Shown: in pieces, positions 8,424-56,677 of the stretch
How positions within the stretch are numbered: the first letter of the stretch is position 1
How the letters are laid out: each line of letters begins with the position of its first letter
Sequence record: OP079919.1
Direction: 5' to 3' (one strand)
DNA: 64,000 nucleotides
The notes under the pieces: generated by a model
Told to the model about the DNA's origin: nothing
The model's database searches: none
What the model saw: only the letters and a program-made list of their open reading frames with translations
Made by a program: the position numbers and the translations under genes

Positions 8424-8734
8424 AGATTTATGCTGTAGTTAGCAAGGAAACCGATAATGTGATCGCTAAGTTTCTCGATCACGGGACGGAGAAAATCAAG
8501 TTCAATGGGATCAAATTGGGTATCCTGGATCAACAGGTTCAGCCTGATGAAAGAGAGTTGCTGAAAGTTGTAGAGGTTTATCTTTCGTCGTCAAAAGGAA
8601 AGATGGATCAGACGAAACAACTCGATCCAGACACGTTTATTGTTGAGACGCTCAGTTATTATGAGGAGGTCGATTTTGTCTATCTATCTCGTAACCCTGA
8701 GCATGACATCGCTCTGTGCACACCAAAGGAATAA
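8420..8734 (+). CDS. Hypothetical protein
   Basis: ATGA coupling. Confidence 0.7.
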   Translation: MKIYAVVSKETDNVIAKFLDHGTEKIKFNGIKLGILDQQVQPDERELLKVVEVYLSSSKGKMDQTKQLDPDTFIVETLSYYEEVDFVYLSRNPEHDIALCTPKE

Positions 8735-8736
8735 CG

Positions 8737-40951: not shown

Positions 40952-41368
40952 ATGAAAAATATCTTTATCGCCCTCTCTCTGTTCGTTTTCTCTTTCTCCG
41001 CACTAGCTGAAGATTTTGTCTGTAAGACAGAAGCCTATGTCGCCGATCCGAAAGGAACCGATCCGGCAGTAATAACTCACGGCGTTTACAGTTTTGATTA
41101 TAATCGCGCTACCGACGTTTTAACCAAAATCGATGGTAAGAAAGATGACTTCGCAGTCCCTACCTTTGCGGTAGGTAAGGACGACAAAGGCATCACCGTC
41201 CGCGTGGGGTATAAAGGCAAAATGGTATATTGGTTTGGGTTTAACGGCCGGGCTATCGATTCCGTCATTCTGGCGGAACATAAAACCATGATAACCCGAG
41301 ATTCTTTTAAAGGGGATACCATGGCGAAAACTGTTTATTTGAAAATGTACAGCGACTGTTCTTATTAA
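40952..41368 (+). CDS. Secreted protein
   Basis: Sec signal peptide ending in ALA; Cys pair. Confidence 0.75.
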   Translation: MKNIFIALSLFVFSFSALAEDFVCKTEAYVADPKGTDPAVITHGVYSFDYNRATDVLTKIDGKKDDFAVPTFAVGKDDKGITVRVGYKGKMVYWFGFNGRAIDSVILAEHKTMITRDSFKGDTMAKTVYLKMYSDCSY

Positions 41369-41377
41369 GGGACGACG

Positions 41378-42073
41378 ATGAAAAGAAATGTGTTCGTCGA
41401 AATGCTCGACAACGGAGTGAGGATAAGAGCGCTTTCGGAAGATGCTAAATCCACACTGATCGACCACACGTTCACCACTCAATCGTTGTTGACTTCCGAA
41501 CAGTTTCGGCGCCTAGTGGACATCGCAGAAGAGAATTGGGAGATCGAAAGTCAGTTTAGAAGATCTGTCCAGCTGTGTGTCCACTGGGGTGTGGTTACCA
41601 AGGAAATCGTAGACGGGTTAACTGAATACATCGGCGATCGTAAAGTTGCTGAACTGGGTTGCGGGCACGGTTATCTTCTTTCTTGTTTAAAAGAAAAAGG
41701 AGTCGATATCCGAGGATACGACCTGGGGATCGAATCAGGAGAGGCCGAAGAATGGTTGGGGTCTAAACTCGTAACTGATAAAAAGCACCATTTGTTTGCT
41801 TCTTATACTTCGGGCAATTATAACGAACTCTCGTTCGATTATTACGATATCATTCTCATGGTCTGGCCTCGTAATGCCGATCAAGCATTACTCAAAATGA
41901 AGCCTAGACAGACGCTCATTCTTATCGGGGAATTGGACGGCTGCACCGGAGGTCCTCTTCAAGAGAGGATTTTGAATGAGCGTTTTGAAGTCATAGAAGA
42001 AAATTTCTTAGGGAAGCATTATATCCGCTGGGATGGACTCCACGACAAGATTAACATTTATCGTAAAAACTGA
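41378..42073 (+). CDS. Class I SAM-dependent methyltransferase-like protein
   Basis: KVAELGCGHGYL, GYDLG, IILMVWP, IGELDGCTG. Confidence 0.75.
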   Translation: MKRNVFVEMLDNGVRIRALSEDAKSTLIDHTFTTQSLLTSEQFRRLVDIAEENWEIESQFRRSVQLCVHWGVVTKEIVDGLTEYIGDRKVAELGCGHGYLLSCLKEKGVDIRGYDLGIESGEAEEWLGSKLVTDKKHHLFASYTSGNYNELSFDYYDIILMVWPRNADQALLKMKPRQTLILIGELDGCTGGPLQERILNERFEVIEENFLGKHYIRWDGLHDKINIYRKN

Positions 42074-42100
42074 CATCAACTTTATTTAGGGAAACGTATC

Positions 42101-42556
42101 ATGTCATTACTGAAAAACATCGTTATTAAATCTTCTTCTATTTCCGCCATCTGTGGGATTCCGACTTATAAGGATAAACCTTGCGCTTACACCAACGTGG
42201 GGTTCAATCGCAAACTTTACGGTACGGGCGTGGACTACGTCCTCGATAATTCGGATGGGATCCTCAAACAAACTAATCTGGATGAAACCAGTTCTGATCA
42301 GCCGACTAAGCTTAACGGTGTTTTCGTTATTAAACACATGACCGGGTTGGTTGACGGCAATTCCTGCGTAATCGGGGTTAAGGACGACGTCATCCTTTGC
42401 GTGGCGGACAACAAAGGACTTATCTGGACCCACCCCACCTGTTCCACAATGAGTATTCAGGATGAGTGTCTCAAAGAGGTGATGACTCCCGACGGATTCG
42501 AGCAGTATAAGTTGGGTCGTAAACGTCGCTTCTCTGACGATCTGGCTTTCTTTTAA
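42101..42556 (+). CDS. Hypothetical protein
   Basis: TTTAGGGA...ATCATG start. Confidence 0.75.
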   Translation: MSLLKNIVIKSSSISAICGIPTYKDKPCAYTNVGFNRKLYGTGVDYVLDNSDGILKQTNLDETSSDQPTKLNGVFVIKHMTGLVDGNSCVIGVKDDVILCVADNKGLIWTHPTCSTMSIQDECLKEVMTPDGFEQYKLGRKRRFSDDLAFF

Positions 42557-42568
42557 AGGAAACGAAAA

Positions 42569-42883
42569 ATGCACTCGCAGCTCACAACCATTATTGACAC
42601 GGTGGAAAGGGTCAAAAACGATCGGTTTAATCCCGAGACCTTCATCACCAGTCGAAAAGTAAGCACCAACGATATGGTGTTTTCTTACAGTTATCTTTTG
42701 GGTAATCTTTACATCAAAGGTGCGTTCGACGACGGCGAATTCGAAATCTTCAAAGATCACGCTACCTGGCAGGTTTGGATCTGGGGTGAAAAGAAACCGG
42801 ATCGCTGTCAGTTCTCCTGTCCTGAACACGGGTACGATAAAGTAAAACACTTTATCGAAACCACTTTCCCAGAAACGAAATAA
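42569..42883 (+). CDS. Hypothetical protein
   Basis: AAGGA SD. Confidence 0.7.
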   Translation: MHSQLTTIIDTVERVKNDRFNPETFITSRKVSTNDMVFSYSYLLGNLYIKGAFDDGEFEIFKDHATWQVWIWGEKKPDRCQFSCPEHGYDKVKHFIETTFPETK

Positions 42884-42925
42884 CGTGGTTGGGGAGAAAC
42901 CTCCCCAGCTAATTAAGAGGCCGAT

Positions 42926-43402
42926 ATGGATACCATTTCAGTATTAACTCATCAAATTGTCGTCGTTCAAATGGATGAGGAAACACTCACTTTGAAAGAT
43001 CTTCGTCATGACGGCACGCTGGTCTTCAAGCACTTTGATGATAATTCCCCCCGAGCGACGTTGAATGATCTGAAAAGGTTATTTGAGGCGGGAGACCTCC
43101 TCCTGAGAATCAAAGGACATAATGAGATAGGTGTTTCAGAAGGGTTTGATTTTACTGGCTACGTCGAATTACACAACGTAGTCCTCACCGACCCAATTCT
43201 GGAAAACACGGATCTTCTTGACGTCAGCCTCCCTAACAACACTTTCTTATCGGTGCGCTTTGCTTCTCTAGAACGTGTCTCCACTGATGTCAAGTCAAAG
43301 AAAATCTTTTTGGCTTATGGGCTATATGCCGGGACTGATTTAACGACAGCTGGTGACATCAATCTCGTTAATGGTCAGCGGTGTAACTTGGATAGAATTT
43401 AA
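42926..43402 (+). CDS. Hypothetical protein
   Basis: GAGG SD. Confidence 0.7.
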   Translation: MDTISVLTHQIVVVQMDEETLTLKDLRHDGTLVFKHFDDNSPRATLNDLKRLFEAGDLLLRIKGHNEIGVSEGFDFTGYVELHNVVLTDPILENTDLLDVSLPNNTFLSVRFASLERVSTDVKSKKIFLAYGLYAGTDLTTAGDINLVNGQRCNLDRI

Positions 43403-43411
43403 GAGGTAGCC

Positions 43412-43804
43412 ATGATTACTGTCGATTTAACAATGGGTTGCGTGACTCGTCTGGGTCTAATCATCAACAGAATCCAAAATTATCCGCGTCATAAGGCCCT
43501 CAAAGATTTAGCTCCGCTATTTATCTTTGATGAAACCAATTGGTTTTACCCGCGTTGCGAAATAAAGTGGAATAACCCGGAAACCTTAATCACCTGGCTG
43601 GGGTTGGTGGCTGATGAATTTCCCGAAGTCGGTGAAGAAGTCGAATTGATCGTTCGTGCAATCGAGGGTAAAACGTCCGGTCGGGTCAGTGTTTTTGATT
43701 TACTCAATACCCCCACTCACCAACACCTTCTCCTGGTTTGGGATATCCATGAGAAAAAGACAACGGTTAAACATCCAGGCGGTGACCATCCCTTCTTTAA
43801 ATAA
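43412..43804 (+). CDS. Hypothetical protein
   Basis: GAGGT SD. Confidence 0.7.
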   Translation: MITVDLTMGCVTRLGLIINRIQNYPRHKALKDLAPLFIFDETNWFYPRCEIKWNNPETLITWLGLVADEFPEVGEEVELIVRAIEGKTSGRVSVFDLLNTPTHQHLLLVWDIHEKKTTVKHPGGDHPFFK

Positions 43805-43830
43805 TCCGTTTTTCTTTAGGAATTAACATC

Positions 43831-44208
43831 ATGTCTAAGTTATCATCTTCAGCGGTAAATGATTTATTTTGTGAGTGTTTGGCTGGATCAGAAGAAGATC
43901 CCGACGTAAAGGTCGTAGTGGGTATCGTAGGGGTCTTTATCTTCGATCCCGCTAAACTTATTGAAAACAAAGAAAGTATCGTTTCTTTTCTCATGGAGCT
44001 TCCTGAGAAATTTCAGGAAGAGAAAGGAGGCGGGTGGAGTTTCCTCGAAGCTTGTATGGATAAAGAGGGAAACCACTGGGCAGAACATCCAACCATCGAA
44101 CGGCTAATGGGTCTGGGAATCGCCATAGATAAAGTAGAATACGTTCTACCGCGCGAAATGTGGTCCGTCCTCCCAGGCGGAATGCCGTATTTTGTTATTA
44201 AGAAATAA
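43831..44208 (+). CDS. Conserved phage hypothetical protein
   Basis: ELPE.F....GGGWSFL.AC.D..G..W...LPGGMPY motif recalled from other phages. Confidence 0.75.
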   Translation: MSKLSSSAVNDLFCECLAGSEEDPDVKVVVGIVGVFIFDPAKLIENKESIVSFLMELPEKFQEEKGGGWSFLEACMDKEGNHWAEHPTIERLMGLGIAIDKVEYVLPREMWSVLPGGMPYFVIKK

Positions 44209-44237
44209 CCAAACCTAACTTTTGAAAGGAACATCCA

Positions 44238-44696
44238 ATGAAAAGCATCGTTTTAGTTTTACTCTCTTTCTTTTCCGCTTCCGTATTTGCTGGCGCAATG
44301 GGAATGGTCGATCCTCTGGACGTTGTAGGCGATCGTTGCGCTCCAGGCGATATCGTCTTTTACGGTCAAACTGAAAAAGGACATAAAGAAGTTCTCGTCT
44401 GCCGTTGGGACAATGACGTCTTTTACTCCTACGGTAAGATCGGTCAGAAACCCGAGCTGTATCTTAAAGTCAATGTTCGCGATGTAAGGGCTCAGGTTGA
44501 AGACACCGACAACACCAGCGGCGAACAAGTCATCATCAAAAATGGTAACACGCTTTATTACGTTGGCGCGAAATCTTACTTCAACGAAGCTAAAGATGTG
44601 GGTTGGGTTAACGTTACCGATACCAATGGTAAAAAGATCGTTAACATTCCACTGGTAGGCAGCGGAACCATAAGCGACATTCGTAATCAATTTTAA
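44238..44696 (+). CDS. Secreted protein
   Basis: Signal peptide ending in VFA; Cys pair; Y.YGK.G.KPEL. Confidence 0.75.
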   Translation: MKSIVLVLLSFFSASVFAGAMGMVDPLDVVGDRCAPGDIVFYGQTEKGHKEVLVCRWDNDVFYSYGKIGQKPELYLKVNVRDVRAQVEDTDNTSGEQVIIKNGNTLYYVGAKSYFNEAKDVGWVNVTDTNGKKIVNIPLVGSGTISDIRNQF

Positions 44697-44710
44697 CTGG
44701 GTGGGTTAAG

Positions 44711-45058
44711 ATGACTTATAAAGAGCTCAACGAACTACTCTCTACCAAAACACCGACCGAACAGTTTGTTTGGTTGGAAGCGGAAGTGAAACGTCTCGGT
44801 CTCGAGATCACTGATAAGCGCCACGCTGATTGGATTACTGAAGGAAAGCAAGATCCTTTCGGAGGACGGTATGATGACGATGACCGCGCGCATCAATCTC
44901 AACATACCGACTATGATGTAGGGAACGCCGTTTACCTGGCGGATCGGCACGACCTCAGTCTCATCGCTCAACAAACCGAAGCTAAAGAACGCATCCGCTG
45001 GCTATCCCGGCAGTTGTATAAACATCGATTAATCCAGGCTATCCTTTTAGCCGAATAA
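44711..45058 (+). CDS. Conserved phage hypothetical protein
   Basis: DP.G..Y...TD..AK.RIRWLSR motif. Confidence 0.7.
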   Translation: MTYKELNELLSTKTPTEQFVWLEAEVKRLGLEITDKRHADWITEGKQDPFGGRYDDDDRAHQSQHTDYDVGNAVYLADRHDLSLIAQQTEAKERIRWLSRQLYKHRLIQAILLAE

Positions 45059-45071
45059 CAAAGGTATCACC

Positions 45072-45425
45072 GTGAAAAACATTTTAGGTCTCATCATCCT
45101 GTTCTTCCTGGCAACAACCCCGGCACGAGCCCACTTGTTTGGACCGGTGGACCAAGTCAACATCCGTGGTTACGAAACGACTCTGATCAACATGCGGTTA
45201 AAATCGGATCGTAACGACTACTACGCGTTTAGCGTCGGAGACGTCACTAAGGTGGACAGTAAGGGGAATCCGGTTAAGATGTACGTGATGGCTGGCATGG
45301 AAGCCATTTTCCCAATGACCATTAGTAATAAGTACATTAAAAACGACCACATCAAGATCTGTTCCTGGCCTCTTGATGCCCACTCGCAATTCACCGGAAA
45401 GGTATGCTTCGATGTTCGCGTATAA
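45072..45425 (+). CDS. Secreted protein, module gene 1 (chaperone/Ig-like?)
   Basis: GTG start; signal peptide ending in ARA-H; YY and ICS...C motifs. Confidence 0.65.
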   Translation: MKNILGLIILFFLATTPARAHLFGPVDQVNIRGYETTLINMRLKSDRNDYYAFSVGDVTKVDSKGNPVKMYVMAGMEAIFPMTISNKYIKNDHIKICSWPLDAHSQFTGKVCFDVRV

Positions 45426-45807
45426 AACACTCATCATCCTCATTGCAGCGTTTTTCACTAACCTGGCGTTAGCTGACGCGCCCTACATGACTAACAACAC
45501 CGCCTCGTCTTCTGAACGAGTACAGGTCGGTGATGTAAGTTGCGATTCTTCTAAACCACAGTCAACTATTAATATAGGAGCTTACGGTAATAACGGCAAT
45601 CGTTACAGTTACGAAGATTCTGATAAAGGCGGGTTCGTATCCATCTCCATCCCTATCGGGGAATCTGCCGTAAAGACGGATTGCTCGCGCCTCTATGACT
45701 TAGGCGTGAAGATGAAAGAAGTTGAATTAAAACAGCGTGAAATGGCTGTTGCTGCTGCCGAAGAAAACCTTCGGCTCCAACAGCAGCGAGCTTTAGATTT
45801 CAAATAA
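45412..45807 (+). CDS. Secreted protein with C-terminal coiled coil, module gene 2
   Basis: Start moved to the ATG after GGAAAGGT; signal peptide; GDVSC...ISIPI...DCSRLY; heptad tail. Confidence 0.7.
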   Translation: MFAYKTLIILIAAFFTNLALADAPYMTNNTASSSERVQVGDVSCDSSKPQSTINIGAYGNNGNRYSYEDSDKGGFVSISIPIGESAVKTDCSRLYDLGVKMKEVELKQREMAVAAAEENLRLQQQRALDFK

Positions 45808-45852
45808 CCAACCTTAACGTTATACCAACCAACCCAACAGGAAAATTCCTAA

Positions 45853-46344
45853 ATGAAAAAGATCATGATCGCTATTGCTCTTCTGTCTACCACAGCATTC
45901 GCCAACGCCGCTTCTGAGCAGGTATGGAACGCGTCTCTCACCAACAGCCAAATCACCTGCGGCATCGACTACACCGGCGGCACCCCGGTTGAAGGCGGTA
46001 TTCTTACTGCTAACGAAAGCGGGACGAATACGTCCAAAGCCATTTCCTTCACCCTGATCGCGAACACGCAAAACGTCAACTGGCAGATCACCGAAGCCAA
46101 ACTGGTTCAAAACACCGGCCGGTTTGATTTCAGCGATAACCTACTGAGCGTAAACGATAAAACCAAAACGTCGGTTTACATCAACGATCAGGAATACGCG
46201 TGGCCTGACGCCGCTCAAGCTAAAGCGTTGGCGAGCAATTCTCGCGTGATCAAACTGGCGCCGAAAATCAATCTGGAACAGTCGGTCTTCCCGGTCGGGA
46301 CAACCCGCATCCAAGGCAAGATTGTGATCAACTGCATTCAGTAA
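45853..46344 (+). CDS. Secreted pilin/fimbrial-subunit-like protein, module gene 3
   Basis: Signal peptide ending in ANA; N- and C-terminal Cys; terminal beta-strand FPVGTTRIQGKIVINC. Confidence 0.6.
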   Translation: MKKIMIAIALLSTTAFANAASEQVWNASLTNSQITCGIDYTGGTPVEGGILTANESGTNTSKAISFTLIANTQNVNWQITEAKLVQNTGRFDFSDNLLSVNDKTKTSVYINDQEYAWPDAAQAKALASNSRVIKLAPKINLEQSVFPVGTTRIQGKIVINCIQ

Positions 46345-46363
46345 TCGTCATCTACACATCTTC

Positions 46364-46392
46364 AATAGGGGGAGATACTCCCCCTATTTTTT
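46364..46392 (+). terminator. Terminator after the secreted module
   Basis: 11-bp stem followed by T-tract. Confidence 0.8.
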
Positions 46393-46413
46393 ACACCCCT
46401 CACTTTTAGGAAA

Positions 46414-46818
46414 ATGCAAATGTCTACTATCTCTCAAAACTCAACTACTGATATGAACGGCAAAGTGACTTTTAATAAAGGCGCTTTCCCGCAGCTGATG
46501 ACCCCAACTTTCATGATCTTCATCTGGGCCTATCAGCCGGTTATGAACGCCATCCAGGGCTGGAACCCGGCCATCGGTTTCATCTTCGCCTTTGTCGTCT
46601 TCCTGATCTGGTTTTGTCATGACCGCGCATTCTTGGCTTCACAAGGTGCGTTCGTCCCTCACTGGCTTTGGTTCCTTTTCGTTCCGGTGTATATCTATAA
46701 ACGCCAGAAACGTAACGGTAATAGCCGTTGGTGGGTCGTCTTCTGGCTGATCAGCGTAATAATGGGGTTGGTGGTTTCCGCCGCCACTATGGCAGTATTC
46801 CATCCCCAGGGTTACTGA
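46414..46818 (+). CDS. Membrane protein
   Basis: Several TM helices; LFVPVYIYKR motif. Confidence 0.75.
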   Translation: MQMSTISQNSTTDMNGKVTFNKGAFPQLMTPTFMIFIWAYQPVMNAIQGWNPAIGFIFAFVVFLIWFCHDRAFLASQGAFVPHWLWFLFVPVYIYKRQKRNGNSRWWVVFWLISVIMGLVVSAATMAVFHPQGY

Positions 46819-46823
46819 TTTCA

Positions 46824-46851
46824 TTTGTGAGGCGGAATTCCGCCTCACAAA
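46824..46851. terminator. Perfect 28-bp palindrome
   Basis: TTTGTGAGGCGGAA-TTCCGCCTCACAAA. Confidence 0.7.
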
Positions 46852-46893
46852 AACTCTCTTTTATTTTTTATTTATTTCTTAGGAATAAACATC

Positions 46894-47538
46894 ATGGCAA
46901 CTCCACGTAAAAAGAAACCCGCAACAAAAAACCGCATGACTTTCGAACAAAAACGTCTGTCTGAAATCATTAAGAAAGTCTATCACGAGCTCTATTTTGT
47001 CGGGGCGTCTTTTTATAAACCGACGGCGGTCAACGCCAACAAGCTCTTCTTAGGAGCTCAGGGTAAAGAAGTTCATACCGCGCGGCGAATTCTATTAGAT
47101 CATTTGATCAGCCTTAAGACGAACTGGCCTTTATGGGTTGGGTGTTTCTTCAATACCCCTAATGGAATCTCTGTGGCTACCGCAGACTCTTTATGGGAAG
47201 CAGAGACGATGTTATCCTTCGGGGGACAGTTCAATAAAAGAATAGAGACTGTGGTAGATGGCATCATCGAAGCTGAAAATGACCCCGACTGCACTCGGGA
47301 AACATTGATAGGCTACGGATATTTCTTTAGCCACTGCGACATCTACAACATGTCCGGGACAGACGAACGTTTAGTAAAACTGATGCTCCCCTATATGGAC
47401 AAGCATTTGGCTAAAGAAGTTAAACCAGAAGACGTCGTCGTTAGCACAGACCTTTTGATCGAATCAATAGTCAAGCGTGGTGGGGTCGCTAAAGATGGCA
47501 AAATCGAAGAATACATCGAGGTGTCGGAGGAGTGGTGA
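46894..47538 (+). CDS. Hypothetical protein
   Basis: TTAGGA...ATCATG start; basic N-terminus. Confidence 0.75.
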   Translation: MATPRKKKPATKNRMTFEQKRLSEIIKKVYHELYFVGASFYKPTAVNANKLFLGAQGKEVHTARRILLDHLISLKTNWPLWVGCFFNTPNGISVATADSLWEAETMLSFGGQFNKRIETVVDGIIEAENDPDCTRETLIGYGYFFSHCDIYNMSGTDERLVKLMLPYMDKHLAKEVKPEDVVVSTDLLIESIVKRGGVAKDGKIEEYIEVSEEW

Positions 47539-48086
47539 AACGATTATACCTGTTACTCATTTTGCTCGGATTAAGTTTTAGTAGTTTGGCCAGAGTCGAT
47601 ATCGTCCTGGTCTGTAATAAAGTTGGAGAGACCAAAGGAACTGGGGTTGTTAAACCGACTCTTTACAACACCGACATCAATTATTTTATAATTTCCAAAA
47701 ATAAAATATCGTTACTTAATGGGCGTTACGGCGGGGTTCTTATGGAACTGCCTTTTTTCCTTTATCATGATAAAGGAAAAATAGAGGGTAGTGGGACTGC
47801 TGGGTACGATAAGATCGATCTCGGTTTTACTAACGGCGACCTCGTCATAAACCTCACTAGGTTCACGAAATTCATAGCGACCCCGGATAACAAAGAGAAC
47901 AAAGTAGATAAAACGATTGAGTTCTCAGAGTGCTATATTTTGGATAGGATTATCACGCCTGAAGCAGAGGATGCAGTTCCTTTCTCTAAAAGCGATAATA
48001 GTGACACCAAAAGCAGAAGAGGTCCTGGTCCAGGTCCGGCTAATCCAGGTAGTCACCCCAACGGTCCTCCGGGACCACCCCGTTAA
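47532..48086 (+). CDS. Secreted protein with Pro/Gly-rich tail
   Basis: Signal peptide; ends GPGPGPANPGSHPNGPPGPPR. Confidence 0.7.
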   Translation: MVKRLYLLLILLGLSFSSLARVDIVLVCNKVGETKGTGVVKPTLYNTDINYFIISKNKISLLNGRYGGVLMELPFFLYHDKGKIEGSGTAGYDKIDLGFTNGDLVINLTRFTKFIATPDNKENKVDKTIEFSECYILDRIITPEAEDAVPFSKSDNSDTKSRRGPGPGPANPGSHPNGPPGPPR

Positions 48087-48104
48087 TTACTCAAAGGAAA
48101 TATC

Positions 48105-48722
48105 GTGGAAAAAACTATTTTTGACAAGATCGTCGACTGGTCTACTGAACGTAATATCATCACCGCGGGGAAGCCTTCCGGCCAAGTCCTTAAAGTCATG
48201 GAAGAAATGGGGGAGATTGCTGGCGGCGTTGCACGCAACAAACTCGATTTGATCAAAGATGCGGTGGGTGACGTATTGGTCATCATGACTAACGTTGCGA
48301 AGATGTACGGGGTTGAGCCGTCTTCTGTTATTACCTTTGACGAAGAAGAACGAGGAGGGCATTTTGAATGGAGCGCTGGTACGATTGGGTTGATCGCGGA
48401 CATGTACGCCTTTTGGGGGGAAGCTTTTAGCCTTGTAGAAGATTACGACGTCGAGCGTAAATTTACCGACCTAGAAGCCGTCTATTATCCGGTGCTCAAC
48501 ATCCTTTATGAAATCTCCCGCCGTTATAACTTTACGTTGCAAGAAGCTGTCGAAGCGTCTTACGACGAGATTAAAGATCGTAAGGGGGTTTTCTATAATG
48601 ACGTCTTTGTTAAAGAAGCCGACTTCACTCCAGCTTGGGCGGTTGAGACGTTAGCGGATAAAGGTCTGTCGATGTCGGCTCGCGGATATCTCTCCCATTG
48701 GTTGGCGAGACAAGCCGGTTAG
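48105..48722 (+). CDS. MazG-like nucleotide pyrophosphohydrolase
   Basis: Q.LKVMEEMGE...DAVGDV and Y.EIKDRKG...D.FVKE. Confidence 0.85.
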   Translation: MEKTIFDKIVDWSTERNIITAGKPSGQVLKVMEEMGEIAGGVARNKLDLIKDAVGDVLVIMTNVAKMYGVEPSSVITFDEEERGGHFEWSAGTIGLIADMYAFWGEAFSLVEDYDVERKFTDLEAVYYPVLNILYEISRRYNFTLQEAVEASYDEIKDRKGVFYNDVFVKEADFTPAWAVETLADKGLSMSARGYLSHWLARQAG

Positions 48723-48768
48723 TAATCTTTGTGGGTGGGGTTTCCCACCCCCTATTTAGGAGAAAATT

Positions 48769-49044
48769 ATGGCTCAGGCGCCATCCATAGTTTATTATGC
48801 TGCACGCACCACACCGACGGGAATTCTTTTGGTTGGTCAGGATCCTGACACCAAAGAGGTTCGTAAGTTCGATGTACCTAAAGATAAGCTGAACGCCAAA
48901 TTAGGCGAGAAGTTTCGTTTGAGTTTCGGGGAGTTTCTCAGGGAAGATGAACCCGACCCGATTATCTTCAGGGTTCATGATCTGAGTAAACCCAAAAAGA
49001 AACTCAATCCAAATAAGAAACATGCTAAAAGGAAAAGAAAATGA
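48769..49044 (+). CDS. Hypothetical protein with basic tail
   Basis: AGGAG SD. Confidence 0.7.
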   Translation: MAQAPSIVYYAARTTPTGILLVGQDPDTKEVRKFDVPKDKLNAKLGEKFRLSFGEFLREDEPDPIIFRVHDLSKPKKKLNPNKKHAKRKRK

Positions 49045-49250
49045 TCACGGAGATAGTAACTATCGTACTATGTTACTTCGCCGGAGGGTGGTTTTTACAT
49101 TTACTCTGGTGGCGTAATCAGAGAGCTCCAAAAGAAGGCTACGTCAAAACGTTATTCAAAGCCTGGCTTAGTCCTATATGGCATCTGTTTATTCTTATCG
49201 GCCATGCGTTCAAACGGGTAAGTGAATTCTTTTTGGAAATCTTTAAGTAG
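49041..49250 (+). CDS. Small membrane protein
   Basis: ATGA coupling; hydrophobic segments. Confidence 0.65.
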   Translation: MITEIVTIVLCYFAGGWFLHLLWWRNQRAPKEGYVKTLFKAWLSPIWHLFILIGHAFKRVSEFFLEIFK

Positions 49251-49252
49251 TC

Positions 49253-49477
49253 ATGTTAGAATTTAAAATTAAATGTGTCAGAGGAAGACGGATGTATAAA
49301 CTGTTTTCCTTTTTAAGGGAAGTTCTTTACGGGAGAGGAGTGATTTCTTCTACAGTGATTGACTGGGAGTTGGGAGAAATCACTTTGAGTATCTTTGCGC
49401 CGGGAGAAGAAGAAACACTGACAGAAGAAATAAAACAGTATTGCGAACAACACAGCTCATTGACTTTTCTATCCTAG
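49253..49477 (+). CDS. Hypothetical protein
   Basis: ORF in operon. Confidence 0.6.
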   Translation: MLEFKIKCVRGRRMYKLFSFLREVLYGRGVISSTVIDWELGEITLSIFAPGEEETLTEEIKQYCEQHSSLTFLS

Positions 49478-49501
49478 TCTATCTTTTTAGGAATTAACAT
49501 C

Positions 49502-49750
49502 ATGATGAATAGGTTGAGGTTAAGACTAAAGAAAAACCTTTCTAAGACCTATCGACAATCCATTAGGTTTGAATCAGATTACCGTTATAGGGTTATCGAC
49601 CTCGGCAATCATTTTCGTATTGAGAAAAGGATCTCTGGATATTGGATATTTGCGCACTGGATGCGTTTACCGGTTATCTTTAACACCTACGACAGGGCTA
49701 AGAACAAGATCATTATTCTCGGTATTCATCACACGTTTAAACTCGGTTAA
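49502..49750 (+). CDS. Hypothetical protein
   Basis: TTTAGGA...ATCATG start. Confidence 0.7.
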   Translation: MMNRLRLRLKKNLSKTYRQSIRFESDYRYRVIDLGNHFRIEKRISGYWIFAHWMRLPVIFNTYDRAKNKIIILGIHHTFKLG

Positions 49751-49780
49751 TCGATTTATTACTAATTAAGGAAACAAAAA

Positions 49781-50203
49781 ATGTACTTATGGTTATTTCG
49801 CATTTTAATGGTGATCGCTGTTGCACTCAATCTTTACGGGACGTCGGTTGGTAGCGAACAAATCGTTTCGTTCGCTGACTGGCTATTTTTACTCTTCACG
49901 TCATTCACGATAGGTTGTTTTATCGCTTTGTGTTTAGTTTACGCCACCCTGTTCGCATCGGGCCAAAAGGTCAAAGATATGGCTAAGAATATCTTAGCTA
50001 AAAATGAAGAACGTAAGAAAAAATCATGGTACGGTCTCAGGGTATGTGTCGGTCGTATCTGGCTATTTGGTTTCATGGCGTTTATGGCTTACTCAGGTTC
50101 ACCTATTTTGGCTACGCTCAGCATCGTCTTCGTATTGATGTCATATGGGCTAAGTTCTTTGATCACGACAAAGGCAAAAGACGTTGTCGCTAAGGAGATT
50201 TAA
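49781..50203 (+). CDS. Four-TM membrane protein
   Basis: Hydrophobic helices. Confidence 0.75.
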   Translation: MYLWLFRILMVIAVALNLYGTSVGSEQIVSFADWLFLLFTSFTIGCFIALCLVYATLFASGQKVKDMAKNILAKNEERKKKSWYGLRVCVGRIWLFGFMAFMAYSGSPILATLSIVFVLMSYGLSSLITTKAKDVVAKEI

Positions 50204-50451
50204 TGGAGAATATCTCTTTCGGCGATTACCGAAGATCATTAGGGCTAACCAGGACCAATCCTAAGACCGATAAAGAATTCGCCGTTCCGGATCACGCAGA
50301 GCGTGTTTATGAGATACCCACGGAGATTGATGTTATCGAGGGCGGGGTAAAGCTTGAGTACATTAGCGGAAAGGGTCACGTGTACGCGACATATTGCTGG
50401 ATCGGCGATATGGGTTGGTGGCGCTGGGAAAGCAGAAATAAACCAAATTAA
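50203..50451 (+). CDS. Hypothetical protein
   Basis: AAGGAG SD; coupled start. Confidence 0.7.
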   Translation: MENISFGDYRRSLGLTRTNPKTDKEFAVPDHAERVYEIPTEIDVIEGGVKLEYISGKGHVYATYCWIGDMGWWRWESRNKPN

Positions 50452-50465
50452 CTTTAGGGAATATC

Positions 50466-50918
50466 ATGGCTAACGAATTCAACATTAACGGTAAAAGTAT
50501 CAATGTGCCTTCAGGCGCGTCCATCAGTTTCTCCAATGGCGAACTGTTAATTAACGGCAAACCTCCTTCAGAGATTGAGCCTGGTCAGAACATCACAGTT
50601 AATATCATTGTGCAGGGTTCTGCTACGAAAATCGATATCGGATCAGGGACCGTTACTGTCAATGGATCGGCCGGGGAAATAAAAACAGCATCCGGCGATG
50701 TTAACGTGCAAGGTAATTGTGAAGGTCAGATAACCACCGCATCGGGTGATGTGGATGTTGGCCAAGAAGCAAGAAACGGAATAAAAACTGCTTCTGGTAA
50801 CGTGACGGCAAAGACTATAAAGGGGAACGTTGAAACTTCTTCCGGAGATATTCAAGCTGATCAGATCGTCGGTAATGTTAAAACGACTTTCGGTACGATA
50901 AAACCCCCTCATGGATAA
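50466..50918 (+). CDS. DUF4097/putative-adhesin-type beta-repeat protein
   Basis: Repeats TASGDV, TASGDV, TASGNV, TSSGDI, TTFGTI. Confidence 0.75.
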   Translation: MANEFNINGKSINVPSGASISFSNGELLINGKPPSEIEPGQNITVNIIVQGSATKIDIGSGTVTVNGSAGEIKTASGDVNVQGNCEGQITTASGDVDVGQEARNGIKTASGNVTAKTIKGNVETSSGDIQADQIVGNVKTTFGTIKPPHG

Positions 50919-50923
50919 ACAAT

Positions 50924-50959
50924 ATATACTCCTACGGCTTAATCGCCGTAGGAGTATAT
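50924..50959. terminator. TACTCC-family hairpin
   Basis: 15-bp stem, TTAATC loop. Confidence 0.8.
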
Positions 50960-51011
50960 TTAAACGGTTATTTTTAGTTATTGAACTTCTCTTCCCTTTT
51001 AAGGATTATCT

Positions 51012-51875
51012 ATGAATTTTCAATCTTTGAAGAAACTCGTCGGCCCGATTGAGTTATCTTGCATATCCTTCTGTTTGTTATTTATGATATTTAATCTACC
51101 GGCGGCTCAGGAGTCGTGGTTAGTCTCCGCAGTATGTTATTTGGCTTTATTGTTCTCTGCCAGTTGGTTATTCAAAGCGGCAGGTTGTGTTCTGTGTTAT
51201 AAAACGGAAGGCGGGTATGATGACGAACACGATCTGGAACATGCAGAGAACGTATTGCGCAGTGAGCTTAGCTCTAAGGAATGGTCTATATTAACCGCGT
51301 GGCGAGTTCTAGTCGGGTTAGTTGTTCTGCTGGGACTGGGAACGTGGTACGGGGTGGGTTATTTCACTATGCTCTTTGCATCGCTGGGATTGGGTTTGCT
51401 TGTCAAAACCTATTACGAAGATTGGAAGAAAAACAACCAACCGGCATTAGAGAATGCCCGTAAAGAATTCATCTTAGCCATTCAAGATGAAGGAGCTATT
51501 CTCAGCGGGGCTGTTTTTATTAAAGGTCGGGGATCCTTCATTCTTAAGAAAGGATATAACGCGGCCGAATTCGACGCCATGCTAGATTGGTTAGATTTTG
51601 ATTACGACCAAGAAGCATTAGAAGATGGATTCATGATGATCCAGGGCTTCTTCGAACTCCAAGGCAACTATCAAATTCAGCGTTATTGGGATGGGGAAGT
51701 TGGAGAATGCTGGGTGGTATTTAAGTACCATGATTTAAGTACCATAACCGATCCGTTAACTTTATCGGCTGCGTTATTAACCGATAATGAATTCGTAGAA
51801 GAATTCGAGGATTACCTCAAGAAACATCCAGAAGAGATAGGATTAGAAAATGAAACCGATCGAACCGGGTTGTAA
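51012..51875 (+). CDS. Membrane protein fused to a soluble phage domain
   Basis: Four N-terminal TMs; C-terminal L.KGY...F...LDFDYD motif. Confidence 0.7.
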   Translation: MNFQSLKKLVGPIELSCISFCLLFMIFNLPAAQESWLVSAVCYLALLFSASWLFKAAGCVLCYKTEGGYDDEHDLEHAENVLRSELSSKEWSILTAWRVLVGLVVLLGLGTWYGVGYFTMLFASLGLGLLVKTYYEDWKKNNQPALENARKEFILAIQDEGAILSGAVFIKGRGSFILKKGYNAAEFDAMLDWLDFDYDQEALEDGFMMIQGFFELQGNYQIQRYWDGEVGECWVVFKYHDLSTITDPLTLSAALLTDNEFVEEFEDYLKKHPEEIGLENETDRTGL

Positions 51876-52290
51876 ATGTGTTATTGTGGCCGACAAATAT
51901 ACTCCTGAAAATGTCGGTAAGGTCGTTACGGTCATACATCGTTACGGTCAGGGAAGTTTCTTCTTATTTAAATACCCCGACGGAATTACCGCGGGCGGAT
52001 CGATCGACTCTCCCGCTTGGAGTGTTGTCGAGCAAATTGATATGAGACTCATACCGCACGGGTCCTCGCCTCTGGTGGTACGTCGCATCGTCGATCTTTG
52101 TGGATCCAATGGGAAAATAAATGGGTTGGTAGGGGAACACAGGCTTATGCGTATAGACGGAGGTGACTTCGACGATAATCCTTATCGGGAGAAGAAACCT
52201 GTCTCGGAAGTACTGGATTCTTTACAAGCTCATTGGATCAATTCACCAGAAGTATGGGATGAACATCAAAGGAGAGCTCAACATGGATGA
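51850..52290 (+). CDS. Conserved phage hypothetical protein
   Basis: IEPGC.C.I...N.GKVV.V...W.V...LMRID. Confidence 0.7.
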   Translation: MKPIEPGCKCVIVADKYTPENVGKVVTVIHRYGQGSFFLFKYPDGITAGGSIDSPAWSVVEQIDMRLIPHGSSPLVVRRIVDLCGSNGKINGLVGEHRLMRIDGGDFDDNPYREKKPVSEVLDSLQAHWINSPEVWDEHQRRAQHG

Positions 52291-52549
52291 TCTGATGAAT
52301 TATCTTTGGGTCTTCCTAGCAATGCTGGGGGCGAAGATTATTTTTGCTATTTACAAAGATAGCAAAGAAATGGGATATAATCCCATTCCCAAAGTAGAAT
52401 GGCGCGGAGGGGCGTTCCCAGCAGGCCCGGTAGTTTATTTTCTTTTCGGGTGCGCGATAGGGAATTACCAAAACATTTATTTATGTTTGGCCGCTCTAGC
52501 GTTAATTATAGTCATTCTCAAATGCGATTTCTTTGTAAGGGAAGAGTAA
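52283..52549 (+). CDS. Small membrane protein
   Basis: Start moved to the ATG after AGGAG; three hydrophobic segments. Confidence 0.65.
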   Translation: MDDLMNYLWVFLAMLGAKIIFAIYKDSKEMGYNPIPKVEWRGGAFPAGPVVYFLFGCAIGNYQNIYLCLAALALIIVILKCDFFVREE

Positions 52550-52619
52550 TCTGAATAGACCTAGTAATAACTGGGTCTATATTACTCCTATACCACACTA
52601 AGATTTAGGAATTAAAATC

Positions 52620-53207
52620 ATGATGAATCAATTAAAGGATTGGATCGATTACTCTTCTTACTGGAATACGTATAACCGCGTTCTTCTTCGTAAAGGAGGG
52701 ATGTACACCGAACAGATCGAACTGGAGCTCACCCCAATTAACGACGAGTGGGACGAAGTTAAACTCTGTAAAATCCGTAAGCATCGTACGAGCATGGGAC
52801 CGGGGGATAAAATTAGTCATCATCTCCATCCTGACATCTTTGCATTGATGGAAGAGAAGCTAGGATATCATTTAGCTCATTTCATCTTTCACTACGATAT
52901 CTACACTAAGCTAACCAATTACGATGCAAGAAGATACTGGTACTTGCTAGATCGTTATGTCTTTAATGGCGGCGGCGGAATACCGCTGGTGTTGATAGAT
53001 CCAAACTTTGATTTGCTGAGAGAGGATTGGGCTAAAGGGACTTCCTCGGCTTACGCCGACGCTAAACAACGCATTATGGATAGATTGAACATAGGGTTGG
53101 ACCAGGTAAACAATCTGAGTTTTTTCGGGGATTTAAGACGCTTGGACATTCACGATCACACACCATTTAGAGTGGGCGTGGCAACTTGGGTGGGGGATAA
53201 ACGATGA
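52620..53207 (+). CDS. Hypothetical protein
   Basis: TTTAGGA...ATCATG start. Confidence 0.75.
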   Translation: MMNQLKDWIDYSSYWNTYNRVLLRKGGMYTEQIELELTPINDEWDEVKLCKIRKHRTSMGPGDKISHHLHPDIFALMEEKLGYHLAHFIFHYDIYTKLTNYDARRYWYLLDRYVFNGGGGIPLVLIDPNFDLLREDWAKGTSSAYADAKQRIMDRLNIGLDQVNNLSFFGDLRRLDIHDHTPFRVGVATWVGDKR

Positions 53208-53623
53208 AACTCATTCATGGTAGAACTAGGTCGGTTATCCTCATAGGGAAATACGCCATAAAGCTCCCCTATTTGAAATCCTGGCCGTATTTCGTTAGGG
53301 GGCTATTGGATAACATGTTCGAGAAAAGCTATAACCGATTCCCTAGTGAGTCATTAGCCCCTTTATTATTTTCTCTTCCTGGGGGTTTCTTAAACGTATA
53401 CCCGCGTTGTAGTGTAATAACTGATCCCAAAGACCCGCAACTCTGGAAACTATTCAAAAATCTTTACGAAGAGGATAACGAGTACATTTTAAATATCATA
53501 GAAGTCGCCGAGCCTTCCAACTTCGGTTATTATCAAGGTCGAATAGTAGCGATTGACTATGGTCATGGTCAACAGTACTTTTTGAACAAACGTATCGTCG
53601 AAGATGAATTGGAGTTATTTTGA
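53204..53623 (+). CDS. Minimal protein-kinase-like protein
   Basis: YAIKLP, AEPSNFG and IDYG in kinase order. Confidence 0.45.
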   Translation: MKLIHGRTRSVILIGKYAIKLPYLKSWPYFVRGLLDNMFEKSYNRFPSESLAPLLFSLPGGFLNVYPRCSVITDPKDPQLWKLFKNLYEEDNEYILNIIEVAEPSNFGYYQGRIVAIDYGHGQQYFLNKRIVEDELELF

Positions 53624-53673
53624 ATCTTTATTTAGTCAAGCATGGTTTGGGCGGCTAAACCATAAGGAACGGT

Positions 53674-53919
53674 ATGAGAGATAATTTGGTAATATTGGGT
53701 AAGGGGTTCTATTTAGTAAGAACCCAGGCCGGTTTCAGAAAAGCGATTAAACATAGATTCTCTAATTCTCCGGATATCGCTGAAGAACGACCGTCCAATT
53801 ATCCACGTTCGTACCCGGCCATTGTGTCCATATCGACAGAATACAGGGGGTATTGGTATCCTAGTGTAAACTGGATCCCTTTAAACGACTTACTTGGTCA
53901 GATAAAGGAAAGTGAATGA
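53674..53919 (+). CDS. Hypothetical protein
   Basis: AAGGA SD. Confidence 0.65.
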   Translation: MRDNLVILGKGFYLVRTQAGFRKAIKHRFSNSPDIAEERPSNYPRSYPAIVSISTEYRGYWYPSVNWIPLNDLLGQIKESE

Positions 53920-54185
53920 AATCGGAAATCATCGTTACCAGAACGTTCGCTCAGTTAAAAGAACTTCGGATAATGATCAGCCGTAAATTGGTTAAGTCGG
54001 CTTCTTTGGTTGAAACCACAGAGGGGTGGTCGGTAGAGTTCAAAACTGAATACGGAGATAGAGTATTCTCTTCGTCAAAGAATGCGTACTATCCAAAGAC
54101 CTTTAAAGGTTTTGCAGCACCCATCAAAATGTTGAGAAAGATGGGATTTGACGAAGTAAAGATGGTATTTCTAAAGGCCAAATGA
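53916..54185 (+). CDS. Hypothetical protein
   Basis: ATGA coupling. Confidence 0.65.
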   Translation: MKSEIIVTRTFAQLKELRIMISRKLVKSASLVETTEGWSVEFKTEYGDRVFSSSKNAYYPKTFKGFAAPIKMLRKMGFDEVKMVFLKAK

Positions 54186-54206
54186 TATTAATTTAGGGGA
54201 AATCAA

Positions 54207-54518
54207 ATGAAATTATTTCTGGTCCGTTCGCCCGATAATGCGGGGGAATATGAAAGATGGCGAGAGCTGGTTGTTGTTGCTAGAGATGAAAAGGAAGCAA
54301 AAGACATAACGTTCCCGCATCCCGATTTCGTTTCTGGGACTTCAGTATTTGGACAGGTTCCTACCGGTGATAACCATGGTTCGCTATCAGGGCTTCCTTA
54401 TGGAGAAAAAGGCCGTGGGTATTGGTACCCTAACCGTGATAACCTCCAGGTTATCTGTTTGGGGGAAACGTCTCTTACAGAACCTGGAGCTATATCAGGG
54501 TTTTTCTACCACGCGTAA
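54207..54518 (+). CDS. Hypothetical protein, paralog of 61445
   Basis: MKLFLV...VVVA.D...A...HP. Confidence 0.7.
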   Translation: MKLFLVRSPDNAGEYERWRELVVVARDEKEAKDITFPHPDFVSGTSVFGQVPTGDNHGSLSGLPYGEKGRGYWYPNRDNLQVICLGETSLTEPGAISGFFYHA

Positions 54519-54541
54519 TAAACATCTTTAGGGGAAATATC

Positions 54542-54763
54542 GTGAGACCAATACTTTTAGTCGAAAGAGATCTTACGCCAATCAAAAATGCGGGGGTTGA
54601 GATCGTCATGCCCAAGTTTAGAGTGGTTGGGATTGAGGAGTTAGGCGTCGTCCGATTGGATTCTCCTCAGGGGAAGAAAACGGATATGGATGAGATGTTT
54701 ATCCCGGTCTCTCTAGACATAAATGGGATTTGTGCTTCTTTTGTGATGGCTTTGGGAAATTGA
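54542..54763 (+). CDS. Hypothetical protein, tandem family member 1
   Basis: LVERDLTP. Confidence 0.65.
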   Translation: MRPILLVERDLTPIKNAGVEIVMPKFRVVGIEELGVVRLDSPQGKKTDMDEMFIPVSLDINGICASFVMALGN

Positions 54764-54799
54764 TACAACATGTCTGATGCCGTGATTTGAGGTGGTCTC

Positions 54800-55132
54800 A
54801 TGAAAATAATGGTTTTAGTTGAAAAAGATCTTACCCCGAATGAAATTATGGAATCCAATATTCCGGGACTAAGATTTGAGATAGTAGGGCCAAATCGATT
54901 AGGCGACAGTCTATTTGATTTCCCCCAGAGAAAAGCTCTGGGTGGGGATAAGGATGTCGTTTTGGTATCTCAGGAAATACCCGAGATTATAACAACCAGA
55001 CTTTTCTTTATTGAATGTGGTGAATTTGCTAAGATAATAGGACGCACCCCATTTCGCCTAATAGAGGCGAAAATAAAGAAATACATCGTCGATAACTTAC
55101 ATCGCGCCATTTTAATTACCGAGGGTCAATGA
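54800..55132 (+). CDS. Hypothetical protein, tandem family member 2
   Basis: LVEKDLTP, LVSQE, ECG. Confidence 0.7.
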   Translation: MKIMVLVEKDLTPNEIMESNIPGLRFEIVGPNRLGDSLFDFPQRKALGGDKDVVLVSQEIPEIITTRLFFIECGEFAKIIGRTPFRLIEAKIKKYIVDNLHRAILITEGQ

Positions 55133-55133
55133 A

Positions 55134-55460
55134 ATGAAAGTAACGATTCAAGTACTCGAAGACAGAGAAGTCGATATCATCGAGGCTCTAGAAAAGTGTT
55201 TGTTCATCCCCCATTTCTATTTCGTACATCGGGGGCGCGATAAACGAGAATTCTTAGGGGAGGACGACGATTCCATTTTGATCATCTCACAGGAGTTGGT
55301 TGATTGTTGTCCTGAACTGGTCGTATTGGAATGCGGGGATTTGGAAAAACTGTGTTTCTCCCAACGACGCGCCAAAACCGAAAAAGAGGTTATTATCGAA
55401 TACCTCAAAGCCAATCGAGAAAAGATTATCAAAGTCACTGACTTGCCGGGGTACTATTAA
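55134..55460 (+). CDS. Hypothetical protein, tandem family member 3
   Basis: IISQE, LECG, I.EYL. Confidence 0.7.
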   Translation: MKVTIQVLEDREVDIIEALEKCLFIPHFYFVHRGRDKREFLGEDDDSILIISQELVDCCPELVVLECGDLEKLCFSQRRAKTEKEVIIEYLKANREKIIKVTDLPGYY

Positions 55461-55993
55461 TGACCGCTCGTTATTTTGCCGGTGATTTCCATTTAGGAGA
55501 CCCCTCTATTATCAAATACCGTAAGCAGTTTAAAACGGTAAAGGAGCACGATGAATTTATCGCTGATACGATTTTGGTTAAACCTCGTGATCACGACATA
55601 CTAACGATCGTGGGTGACGGATTCATTAAACCAGAATCGTTGTTCATTCTGAAGAAGTTCCCGTATAAGAAACATCTTATCCCAGGGAATCACTGTATGG
55701 AGAAAGGCGTTAAAGTTACTGATCTCGCTGCTTTCTTCGACGTTGTTACCGGATCGTTTAAATGGAAGAGTGGGTTCTTCGTATCCCATGAACCTCAACA
55801 TCCTGATCATCTCCGAGGTCGCATCAATATTCATGCTCATTTGCATGATAAAGTGATTGAAGACGAACGTTATATCGGGGTGTCGTTAGAACAAACCGGT
55901 TATCGTTTAATCCATCACGATGAGATCTTATCTGGTTCTTATCGTACTTATCGAGCGCCAAGATTAGAAGATCATCTTCACGTAGGAAAATAA
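55460..55993 (+). CDS. Calcineurin-like metallophosphoesterase
   Basis: GDFHLG, VGD, PGNH, SHEP, NIHAHLH. Confidence 0.9.
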   Translation: MTARYFAGDFHLGDPSIIKYRKQFKTVKEHDEFIADTILVKPRDHDILTIVGDGFIKPESLFILKKFPYKKHLIPGNHCMEKGVKVTDLAAFFDVVTGSFKWKSGFFVSHEPQHPDHLRGRINIHAHLHDKVIEDERYIGVSLEQTGYRLIHHDEILSGSYRTYRAPRLEDHLHVGK

Positions 55994-55995
55994 TT

Positions 55996-56256
55996 ATGGA
56001 TCTAGATAACGATATTGTTAGTAAAGAGCATCCCAAACCGATGAGTATAAGCACAGTGTATGGTGATGAGAAAGAAATAGCCTCTCGTGTGTGCGTCATC
56101 GACGCCTGCGTTAATTTCAGCAGGGCTATTGAAGAAGCATGGTTGAAATTACAAAAACCAGAAAAGGTAACAAAAGTCGATTTGAGCTTCGTTATGGAAG
56201 ATGGAAATACATGTGACATAACCGTGGTTAAAAAGATAGAAGATGAAGTATTGTAA
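55996..56256 (+). CDS. Hypothetical protein
   Basis: ORF in operon. Confidence 0.65.
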   Translation: MDLDNDIVSKEHPKPMSISTVYGDEKEIASRVCVIDACVNFSRAIEEAWLKLQKPEKVTKVDLSFVMEDGNTCDITVVKKIEDEVL

Positions 56257-56332
56257 ATCTTTACGAAGCTAAGCGAGATAAAGAACTTAAGGCAACGTTG
56301 AAGAAAATTGTTCCCATTAGTAAGGTGTAAAG

Positions 56333-56677
56333 ATGAATCCATTTAACATTTATTTTTCTGCTTCTCCCCTGGGGTCCGCTATAGGGTTAGCGATCTTGCT
56401 AGTCCTTGGGTGGTTTTTTATTTACCGCAGCCCTACGGTGATTAACCAAGTTATCGGTAAACAGAAACGCGTCTACGTTGTTTTGTTCGTCCTGGTATTT
56501 TTTATCGGGAGTTGTTTTAATATAGGTACTCGGCAAGCTGAGCTTAATCGTTCTCAGTTCGACACCCAGATGAACACTGAGATCATCAAGAAATCACCTA
56601 CCTCCACGGAAGTCTTCGATGCCCGTGGTAACTTTAATCAAGCGTTAGATAAAGCAAAAAAGGAAAATGAACAATGA
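56333..56677 (+). CDS. Two-TM membrane protein coupled to the SPFH gene
   Basis: Two TMs; ATGA overlap with 56674. Confidence 0.75.
   Translation: MNPFNIYFSASPLGSAIGLAILLVLGWFFIYRSPTVINQVIGKQKRVYVVLFVLVFFIGSCFNIGTRQAELNRSQFDTQMNTEIIKKSPTSTEVFDARGNFNQALDKAKKENEQ

Follow-up and report, generated by a model that had tools for sequence, protein, structure and literature searches.

A mobile three-gene module of exported proteins, one with a predicted pilin-like fold, in Klebsiella phage KPN8 and unrelated phages

We analyzed a stretch of 64,000 nucleotides (nt) from sequence record OP079919.1, here called the window, in which three consecutive genes of Klebsiella phage KPN8, designated g1, g2, and g3, encode small proteins with export signals. 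All three are labeled hypothetical proteins in GenBank (KPN8_112 to KPN8_114), as are gp130 to gp132, their equivalents in phage Miami. Window positions equal positions in OP079919.1 minus 62000. Between 44200 and 47600 the window is 100% identical to KPN8 (256.6 kb), a Miamivirus-like Klebsiella jumbo phage, and 95 to 98% identical to Miami, YC1, BUCTxx100, and VB_ZK_P1 of the Miamivirus group. BUCTxx100 (OR529409.1) is labeled a Stenotrophomonas maltophilia phage and is 98% identical to the Klebsiella phages here; its host label is worth checking.

The three genes lie on the plus strand, with boundaries taken from open reading frames (ORFs) and annotation. Gene g1 (45072 to 45425) begins with GTG and encodes 117 amino acids; g2 (45412 to 45807), read from the ATG of the GenBank records, encodes 131; and g3 (45853 to 46344) encodes 163. 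g1 and g2 overlap by 14 nt, an arrangement through which g2 is probably translationally coupled to g1, and a spacer of 45 nt separates g2 from g3. A GC stem-loop (46368 to 46385) followed by a T-run starts 23 nt past the g3 stop codon and forms an intrinsic terminator (46368 to 46392, plus strand) that closes the unit; the Miami record carries an annotated terminator at the equivalent spot. No promoter of the trio's own was identified in the window. The surroundings consist of a long series of small plus-strand genes, including those for a dihydrofolate reductase, a methyltransferase, and a MazG-like pyrophosphohydrolase, which begins about 14 kb downstream of a tail-fiber/tailspike cluster.

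Signal peptides were called by a simple rule (n-region, h-region, and AxA site) rather than by a dedicated predictor. By this rule, a basic n-region, a hydrophobic core, and an AxA-type site were present in 24 of 24 proteins, comprising the trio and its homologs at seven further loci, and every one of the 24 has exactly two cysteines (Cys) in its mature form, at conserved positions. These data agree with a first-pass annotation made from the sequence alone, which had described three consecutive signal-peptide ORFs with Cys pairs, overlapping or closely spaced and closed by a terminator; the sequence motifs that it quoted from g2 and g3 are likewise present. Within the window, signal-peptide-like N-termini occur in 10 of the 94 ORFs, and a series of three is only mildly unlikely; it is conservation elsewhere, not the run of signal peptides itself, that puts the trio beyond chance. 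Nine of these 10 ORFs sit within 17 kb (40952 to 57540), at 40952, 44238, the trio, 47532, 49781, 51012, and 56674, and this stretch from 40.9 to 57.5 kb looks enriched in envelope-directed accessory proteins. Among their products, that of 56674 to 57540 has a lipoprotein-type LSGC site, and that of 47532 to 48086 is a 184-amino-acid exported protein with a Pro/Gly-rich C-terminal tail and no family match.

Codon use also sets g3 apart, as the annotation had noted. Its share of C-ending codons (0.42) is the highest of the 75 plus-strand ORFs of at least 100 amino acids (mean, 0.254; standard deviation, 0.046); that of g1 is 0.38. The GC content of g3 is 51%, versus 43% for the window. Further, each of the four Klebsiella jumbo-phage genera has a higher C-ending share in g3 than in its flanks (0.34 to 0.42 versus 0.24 to 0.28). 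Raised C-ending codon use fits high expression in enterobacteria.

The distribution of the three genes indicates that they belong together. A tblastn search of 50,697 phage records found g1 in 21, g3 in 24, and g2, the most widely detectable member of the trio, in 177 (153 from Vibrio phages). Complete g1-g2-g3 sets, side by side and in the same order, were present in 11 distinct lineages examined: the Miamivirus group, Eowynvirus (L005), Siatvirus (L006), Maaswegvirus (L007), Henunavirus of the Vequintavirinae (L008), in which the trio is embedded in a tRNA array, a 169-kb plasmid-like Providencia rettgeri contig with ParA/ParB (L003), a 29-kb phage-like Klebsiella pneumoniae contig (L004), and the metagenomic contigs L013, L025 (273.6 kb), L026, and L027. 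The carriers include phages of Klebsiella, Erwinia, and related bacteria. The statement in the first-pass annotation that similar trios recur in unrelated phages is thereby borne out, and the neighborhood survey indicates that the genes co-occur elsewhere as a co-inherited exported unit. Identity to the window proteins is 28 to 48% for g1, about 45 to 52% for g2, and 50 to 60% for g3; the g3 homolog of L013 is far more divergent, having been missed by blastp at 1e-4 and found by the g3 profile (E value, 7.6e-13). g1 and g2 overlap by 1 to 17 nt in 10 of the 11 lineages and are separated by a 10-nt gap in the Henunavirus locus.

When all ORFs between 38 and 53 kb of the window were compared by blastp with all ORFs of the other loci, with flanks reaching 5 to 8 kb on either side of the trio, the trio genes alone were in common. 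Since no flanking gene is common to the loci, the trio has moved without its neighbors. Local GC content of the loci compared ranges from 33% to 57%, and that of the trio follows the local value; therefore, the unit has been resident long enough to adapt to different genomes. Variation is also seen among close relatives. The Miami-like phage phiKp_32, otherwise collinear, lacks positions 43834 to 46874 (plus strand), a 3.0-kb block of seven genes (KPN8_109 to KPN8_115) that includes the trio, as found by blastn, by alignment of the junction, and from the phiKp_32 annotation. Near-identical 18-nt motifs containing a ribosome site and start codon lie at both edges of the block (43816 to 43833 and 46879 to 46896) and point to its gain or loss via short-homology recombination. 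With a terminator of its own, variable presence among close relatives, and occurrence in unrelated genomes with different flanks, the unit has the features of a moron-type cassette.

Genes adjoining the trio at two other loci deserve description. In Miami, an extra gene for a 339-amino-acid protein, gp133, directly follows g3 (L001, 6099 to 7300; equivalent to window positions 46298 to 46400). With its DUF723 and T5orf172/GIY-YIG-like domains, gp133 is a putative homing endonuclease. Miami g3 is heavily recoded over its last approximately 50 nt, with six amino-acid changes in the final 18 residues versus one elsewhere, and the KPN8-type g3 end and terminator are present as a copy at the end of the gp133 gene, an arrangement that appears to be the usual footprint of homing-endonuclease insertion. 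The unrelated contig L013 has a gp133 homolog (37% identity; E value, 3e-61) shortly downstream of its own trio (7883 to 9019), and such homing-endonuclease-like genes may aid the spread of the trio. The same contig has an Ail/Lom-family outer-membrane barrel gene directly 3′ of the trio (7308 to 7826).

Beyond these loci the families are rare. A word-indexed search of 5.8 billion proteins returned 18 clusters for g3, 19 for g2, and 2 for g1, and an exhaustive profile search of 1.84 billion representatives returned 19 proteins for g1; one of these is an unrelated long protein of Big_9/cadherin-like repeats, a weak sign of an immunoglobulin (Ig)-type domain in g1. No relative turned up in either of two scans that covered a single genome for each bacterial species. 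In PLSDB there was no match to g3 and a single marginal match to g2, in a Mesorhizobium plasmid, and the JGI metagenomes yielded one Miami-like contig and nothing else. Scans of the trio and its neighbors with Pfam, NCBIfam, and PADLOC gave nothing above noise, none of the three family profiles found a relative among PDB sequences, and g2 produced the only PHROGs match of the trio (PHROG 37374; E value, 2.8e-6). A literature search found no paper on these genes.

Structure models were made for g1 and g3 with AlphaFold2. The g3 model, built from an alignment of 18 sequences, has a mean predicted local distance difference test score (pLDDT) of 86.7 and a predicted template modeling score of 0.75, with a beta-sandwich core spanning residues 36 to 162, in which C36 lies in the first and C161 in the last modeled strand, preceded by a strongly conserved coil (residues ~20 to 35). 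Foldseek searches of the PDB placed five chains of CfaB, from CFA/I, at the top (E values, 9.4e-4 to 4.6e-3), followed by the CS17 pilin, the pilin domain of PapG, FimF/G, FaeG, CsuA/B, SafA, PapA, FimA, and CupE; the list also holds TasA, Saci_0406, and CanA, which form strand-complemented fibers independently of an usher. We read g3 as pilin-like because one structural class dominates the list of matches, not because of any single strong hit, and at these marginal scores g3 is predicted to have a pilin-like fold, in line with the first-pass annotation, which had pointed to a pilin-like strand. Against BFVD, g3 matched a viral protein of 157 residues (A0A2I7S9Y1; E value, 3.7e-7). The family has 22 invariant positions, of which E22, W25, A27, and Q33 fall in the coil segment at the N-terminus; C36 is invariant as well. 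Such a conserved N-terminal segment would fit a binding strand.

g1 has a mature length of approximately 97 amino acids and two conserved Cys (C97 and C112), which together with P81 are its invariant positions. Its model (22 sequences; pLDDT, 89.6) has seven strands, and Foldseek matched it only to generic Ig/fibronectin type III (FnIII)-like domains, from GbpA, complement MG, and glycosidase accessory domains (best E value, 2.5e-3), with CsgC (2xsk) ranked 36th and Caf1M (1z9s) 45th. We therefore keep the small Ig fold that the first-pass annotation had proposed and drop its description of g1 as chaperone-like: from the model, g1 appears to be a generic single-domain Ig-like sandwich and not specifically a chaperone. 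A two-domain PapD-like chaperone was considered and rejected, given the single domain of ~97 residues, the rank of Caf1M, and the lack of any PapD_N or PapD_C match in Pfam among 22 g1 members. Paralogy of g1 and g3 was rejected too, the alignment between them being limited to the signal peptides. In g2, a conserved region of ~70 residues between C44 and C91 is followed by a C-terminal tail of ~40 residues that is charged, Gln-rich, and poor in Pro and Gly. The heptads of a coiled coil, which had also been proposed, did not hold up: the best register score of the 36- to 41-residue tails was matched by 19 to 86% of shuffled sequences.

Distant g2 homologs (28 to 31% identity) are present in Vibrio phages from several unrelated groups, namely, 59-kb Queuovirinae, 79-kb phages, the T5-like pVp-1, and Thalassavirus, and P24, Y25, G40, G56, Y58, Y67, D71, G73, P81, and C91 are invariant in both groups. 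Two further exported proteins always precede the Vibrio g2-like gene, giving permuted three-gene sets (L009, 1654 to 2794; L010, 1708 to 2845; L011, 1717 to 2833; L018 to L021, about 3050 to 4230). One neighbor (149 to 159 residues) resembles g3 in its Cys placement, with one Cys close to the start of the mature protein and the second four residues before the C-terminus; the other (132 to 135 residues) has, as does g1, two Cys near the C-terminus. Comparison of these neighbors with g3 and g1 by hhalign gave a probability of 33%, later 13%, for g3 and of about 1 to 2% for g1, and hidden Markov model searches between them were nonsignificant. The Vibrio unit is likely an analog of the trio; as judged by sequence comparison, homology is proven for g2 alone, the other two proteins being alike in size, signal peptide, and Cys placement.

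The trio is real, conserved, and uncharacterized, and the first-pass reading of it was partly right. Starting from the observed genes, export signals, conservation, linkage, and mobility and from the two predicted folds, we consider it very likely that the three genes constitute a co-functioning exported module. More specifically, we propose a mobile accessory operon whose Sec-exported, disulfide-bonded products form one envelope complex built on the pilin-fold protein g3, a tentative account to which we give somewhat less than an even chance. The products would leave via Sec to the periplasm of the infected cell, where disulfide bonds would form and the three proteins would act jointly. g3 would be the abundant structural subunit, whose free conserved N-terminal segment could pair with a neighboring subunit or with g1; assembly of g3 through such strand complementation is possible, if on the unlikely side. 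g1 and g2, presumably made in fixed proportion via translational coupling, would serve as assembly or anchoring partners, g2 combining a Cys-bracketed conserved domain with a putative helical tail. Because there is neither an usher nor a two-domain chaperone, the product would not be a canonical fimbria but more likely a short oligomer, sheet, or fiber that is periplasmic or sits at the outer membrane; we infer both that g3 oligomerizes and where the proteins finally reside.

As for the benefit to the phage, we suggest as most likely a receptor-independent change of the envelope, for example, one that excludes other phages or keeps the cell protected up to lysis. Since the carriers differ widely in receptors and hosts, such a receptor-independent role is favored over one in which a single receptor is masked. 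The Ail/Lom gene in L013 and the stretch of the window rich in exported proteins count for a role in the envelope. Exclusion or protection in particular is doubtful, and to name a barrier against other phages or a stabilization of the infected envelope as the role is speculation. A bolder version, in which the trio is an usher-less phage pilus-type system, with g3 polymerized by strand complementation with the help of the one-domain g1 and of an oligomerizing g2 in the outer envelope, would yield a virus-encoded surface or periplasmic fiber and make the Vibrio sets a permuted, distant version of it; we regard this version as unlikely.

Several points weigh against the proposed envelope complex. 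The mutual binding of the three proteins and their biological role are inferred. The match of g3 to CfaB is marginal (best E value, 9.4e-4; TM score, 0.42; root mean square deviation, 11 to 12 Å), and no member of the three families matches a Pfam pilin, SCPU, or PapD family; for Fimbrial/SCPU-type families, there was no match at E values up to 1 in 18 g3 homologs. PADLOC finds nothing, and PHROGs offers only a family of unknown function, that of g2; together with NCBIfam, these resources place the trio in no described superinfection-exclusion or defense family. Finally, in L012 a g1 homolog adjoins a tailspike gene, with neither g2 nor g3 beside it, the sole exception to the linkage that we found.

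This solitary g1 homolog is what would be expected if the three products were independent periplasmic effectors, such as inhibitors of host enzymes or sensors, linked merely as neighbors and forming no complex. The generic nature of the g1 domain would also suit such a reading, and lytic phages do make single periplasmic proteins, for example, the T4 antiholin RI (PMC8385771). Yet the gene order, the spacing, and the g1/g2 overlap have persisted in lineages that span 33 to 60% identity and 33 to 57% GC, a divergence over which chance linkage would have decayed; we consider it unlikely that the proteins act separately. Alternatively, g3 might be a pilin-type subunit, such as a fimbrial cap or terminator, that enters the chaperone-usher machinery of the host, with g1 and g2 as helpers, so that no phage usher is needed. 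Enterobacterial hosts carry several chaperone-usher systems, pilins of such systems head the list of structural matches to g3, and the Providencia trio lies ~5 kb from a PapC/PapD operon. However, that operon is separate from the trio, with other genes standing between them; no Usher/PapC gene adjoins the trio at any locus examined; g3 has no sequence similarity to any pilin family; and fimbrial sets vary among hosts, whereas the whole trio is conserved. Entry of g3 into a host pilus is therefore distinctly unlikely.

Roles in lysis or in the virion fit less of the evidence. A spanin-like or lysis-regulating envelope complex would be in keeping with the periplasmic helical tail of g2 and with the position of the permuted trio in T5-like/Thalassavirus Vibrio phages, ~1.2 kb upstream of a putative M15-type peptidase endolysin (read by eye). 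But no member has a lipoprotein signal, no membrane anchor would be left after signal-peptide cleavage, the annotations of the window and of the enterobacterial loci show no lysis gene in the vicinity of the trio, and the predicted beta-rich Ig and pilin folds are unlike those of known spanins; we consider a lysis function very unlikely. That the proteins are virion parts, as head or tail fibers or decoration, is suggested by the large tail-fiber cluster 14 kb upstream in the window and by Vibrio siphophages in which the g2-like gene and its two neighbors follow a gene of ~800 codons and precede a gene matching the Pfam family DnaT_2. Tailed-phage virions assemble in the cytoplasm, whereas cleavable Sec signals direct these proteins out of it; moreover, the trio sits among small accessory genes, occurs also on a plasmid-like bacterial contig, and is dispensed with by the close relative phiKp_32. 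A place in the virion, including the virion appendage raised by the first-pass annotation, has in our judgment an almost negligible probability.

No role is known for the majority of genes in large phages, and of the genes whose role is known, only a small number work outside the cytoplasm. Here, a compact, repeatedly exchanged, and strongly conserved unit has all its products bound for the envelope and a main product with a predicted fold of the kind used for building fimbriae. Should the three proteins assemble, they would constitute a pilin-type system smaller than any known so far and the first one found in phages, and they would show how a virus reshapes the host surface during infection. 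Even without polymerization, it provides three new protein families with a clear signal of co-inheritance. With a natural variant lacking the trio, and with two of its three proteins modeled confidently, it is a tractable entry into unknown phage genes.

Elsewhere in the window, positions 10196 to 31225 hold approximately 10 large genes, several annotated as tail fiber or tailspike and one on the minus strand, and this cluster is in keeping with the many-branched apparatus with which Klebsiella jumbo phages bind receptors.

Among known systems, the trio differs from the spanins, which pair an outer-membrane lipoprotein with an inner-membrane-anchored coiled-coil protein, whereas the trio has no lipobox Cys, cleavable signals throughout, and nonsignificant heptads. 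With the PapD/Caf1M family and with CsgC of curli, g1 shares an exported Ig-like sandwich with a disulfide (a predicted pairing in g1), although these proteins rank behind many unrelated Ig/FnIII domains. PapD-type chaperones have two domains, and g1 has one. The phage accessory, or moron, gene concept has been reviewed (PMC3594210), and such genes (lambda Lom and Bor, T5 Llp, and T4 Imm, Sp, and RI) resemble the trio in being self-contained, terminator-closed, patchy among close relatives, atypical in composition, and exported; the trio differs in comprising three co-evolving genes rather than one, in having no protein similarity to them, and in occurring mostly in large phages isolated as virulent. 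In concept, the nearest known systems are these accessory genes together with strand-complemented fibers that form without a chaperone. TasA of Bacillus (8aur; E value, 0.056), Saci_0406 of archaeal threads (7pnb; E value, 0.056), and the CanA cannulae (7uii) are fold matches of g3, weaker than CfaB; their filaments belong to other organisms and envelopes and have no counterpart to the two dedicated partner genes of g3. These filaments illustrate that an usher is dispensable for building polymers by strand complementation (PMC9715654, PMC12518558). The best structural matches are the class 5 (alternate) chaperone-usher pilins (CfaB 4y2l, E value of 9.4e-4; CS17 8ehs, E value of 1.3e-2). The trio has no member of a pilin sequence family and, in its operon, no usher, two-domain chaperone, or tip adhesin; its carrier is a phage; and donor-strand exchange is conjectural here. 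g3 resembles the class 5 pilins in its mature length of ~145 amino acids, in its predicted export via Sec, and in a modeled beta-sandwich whose core excludes an N-terminal segment, and the trio may act partly like a chaperone-usher system, through strand complementation.

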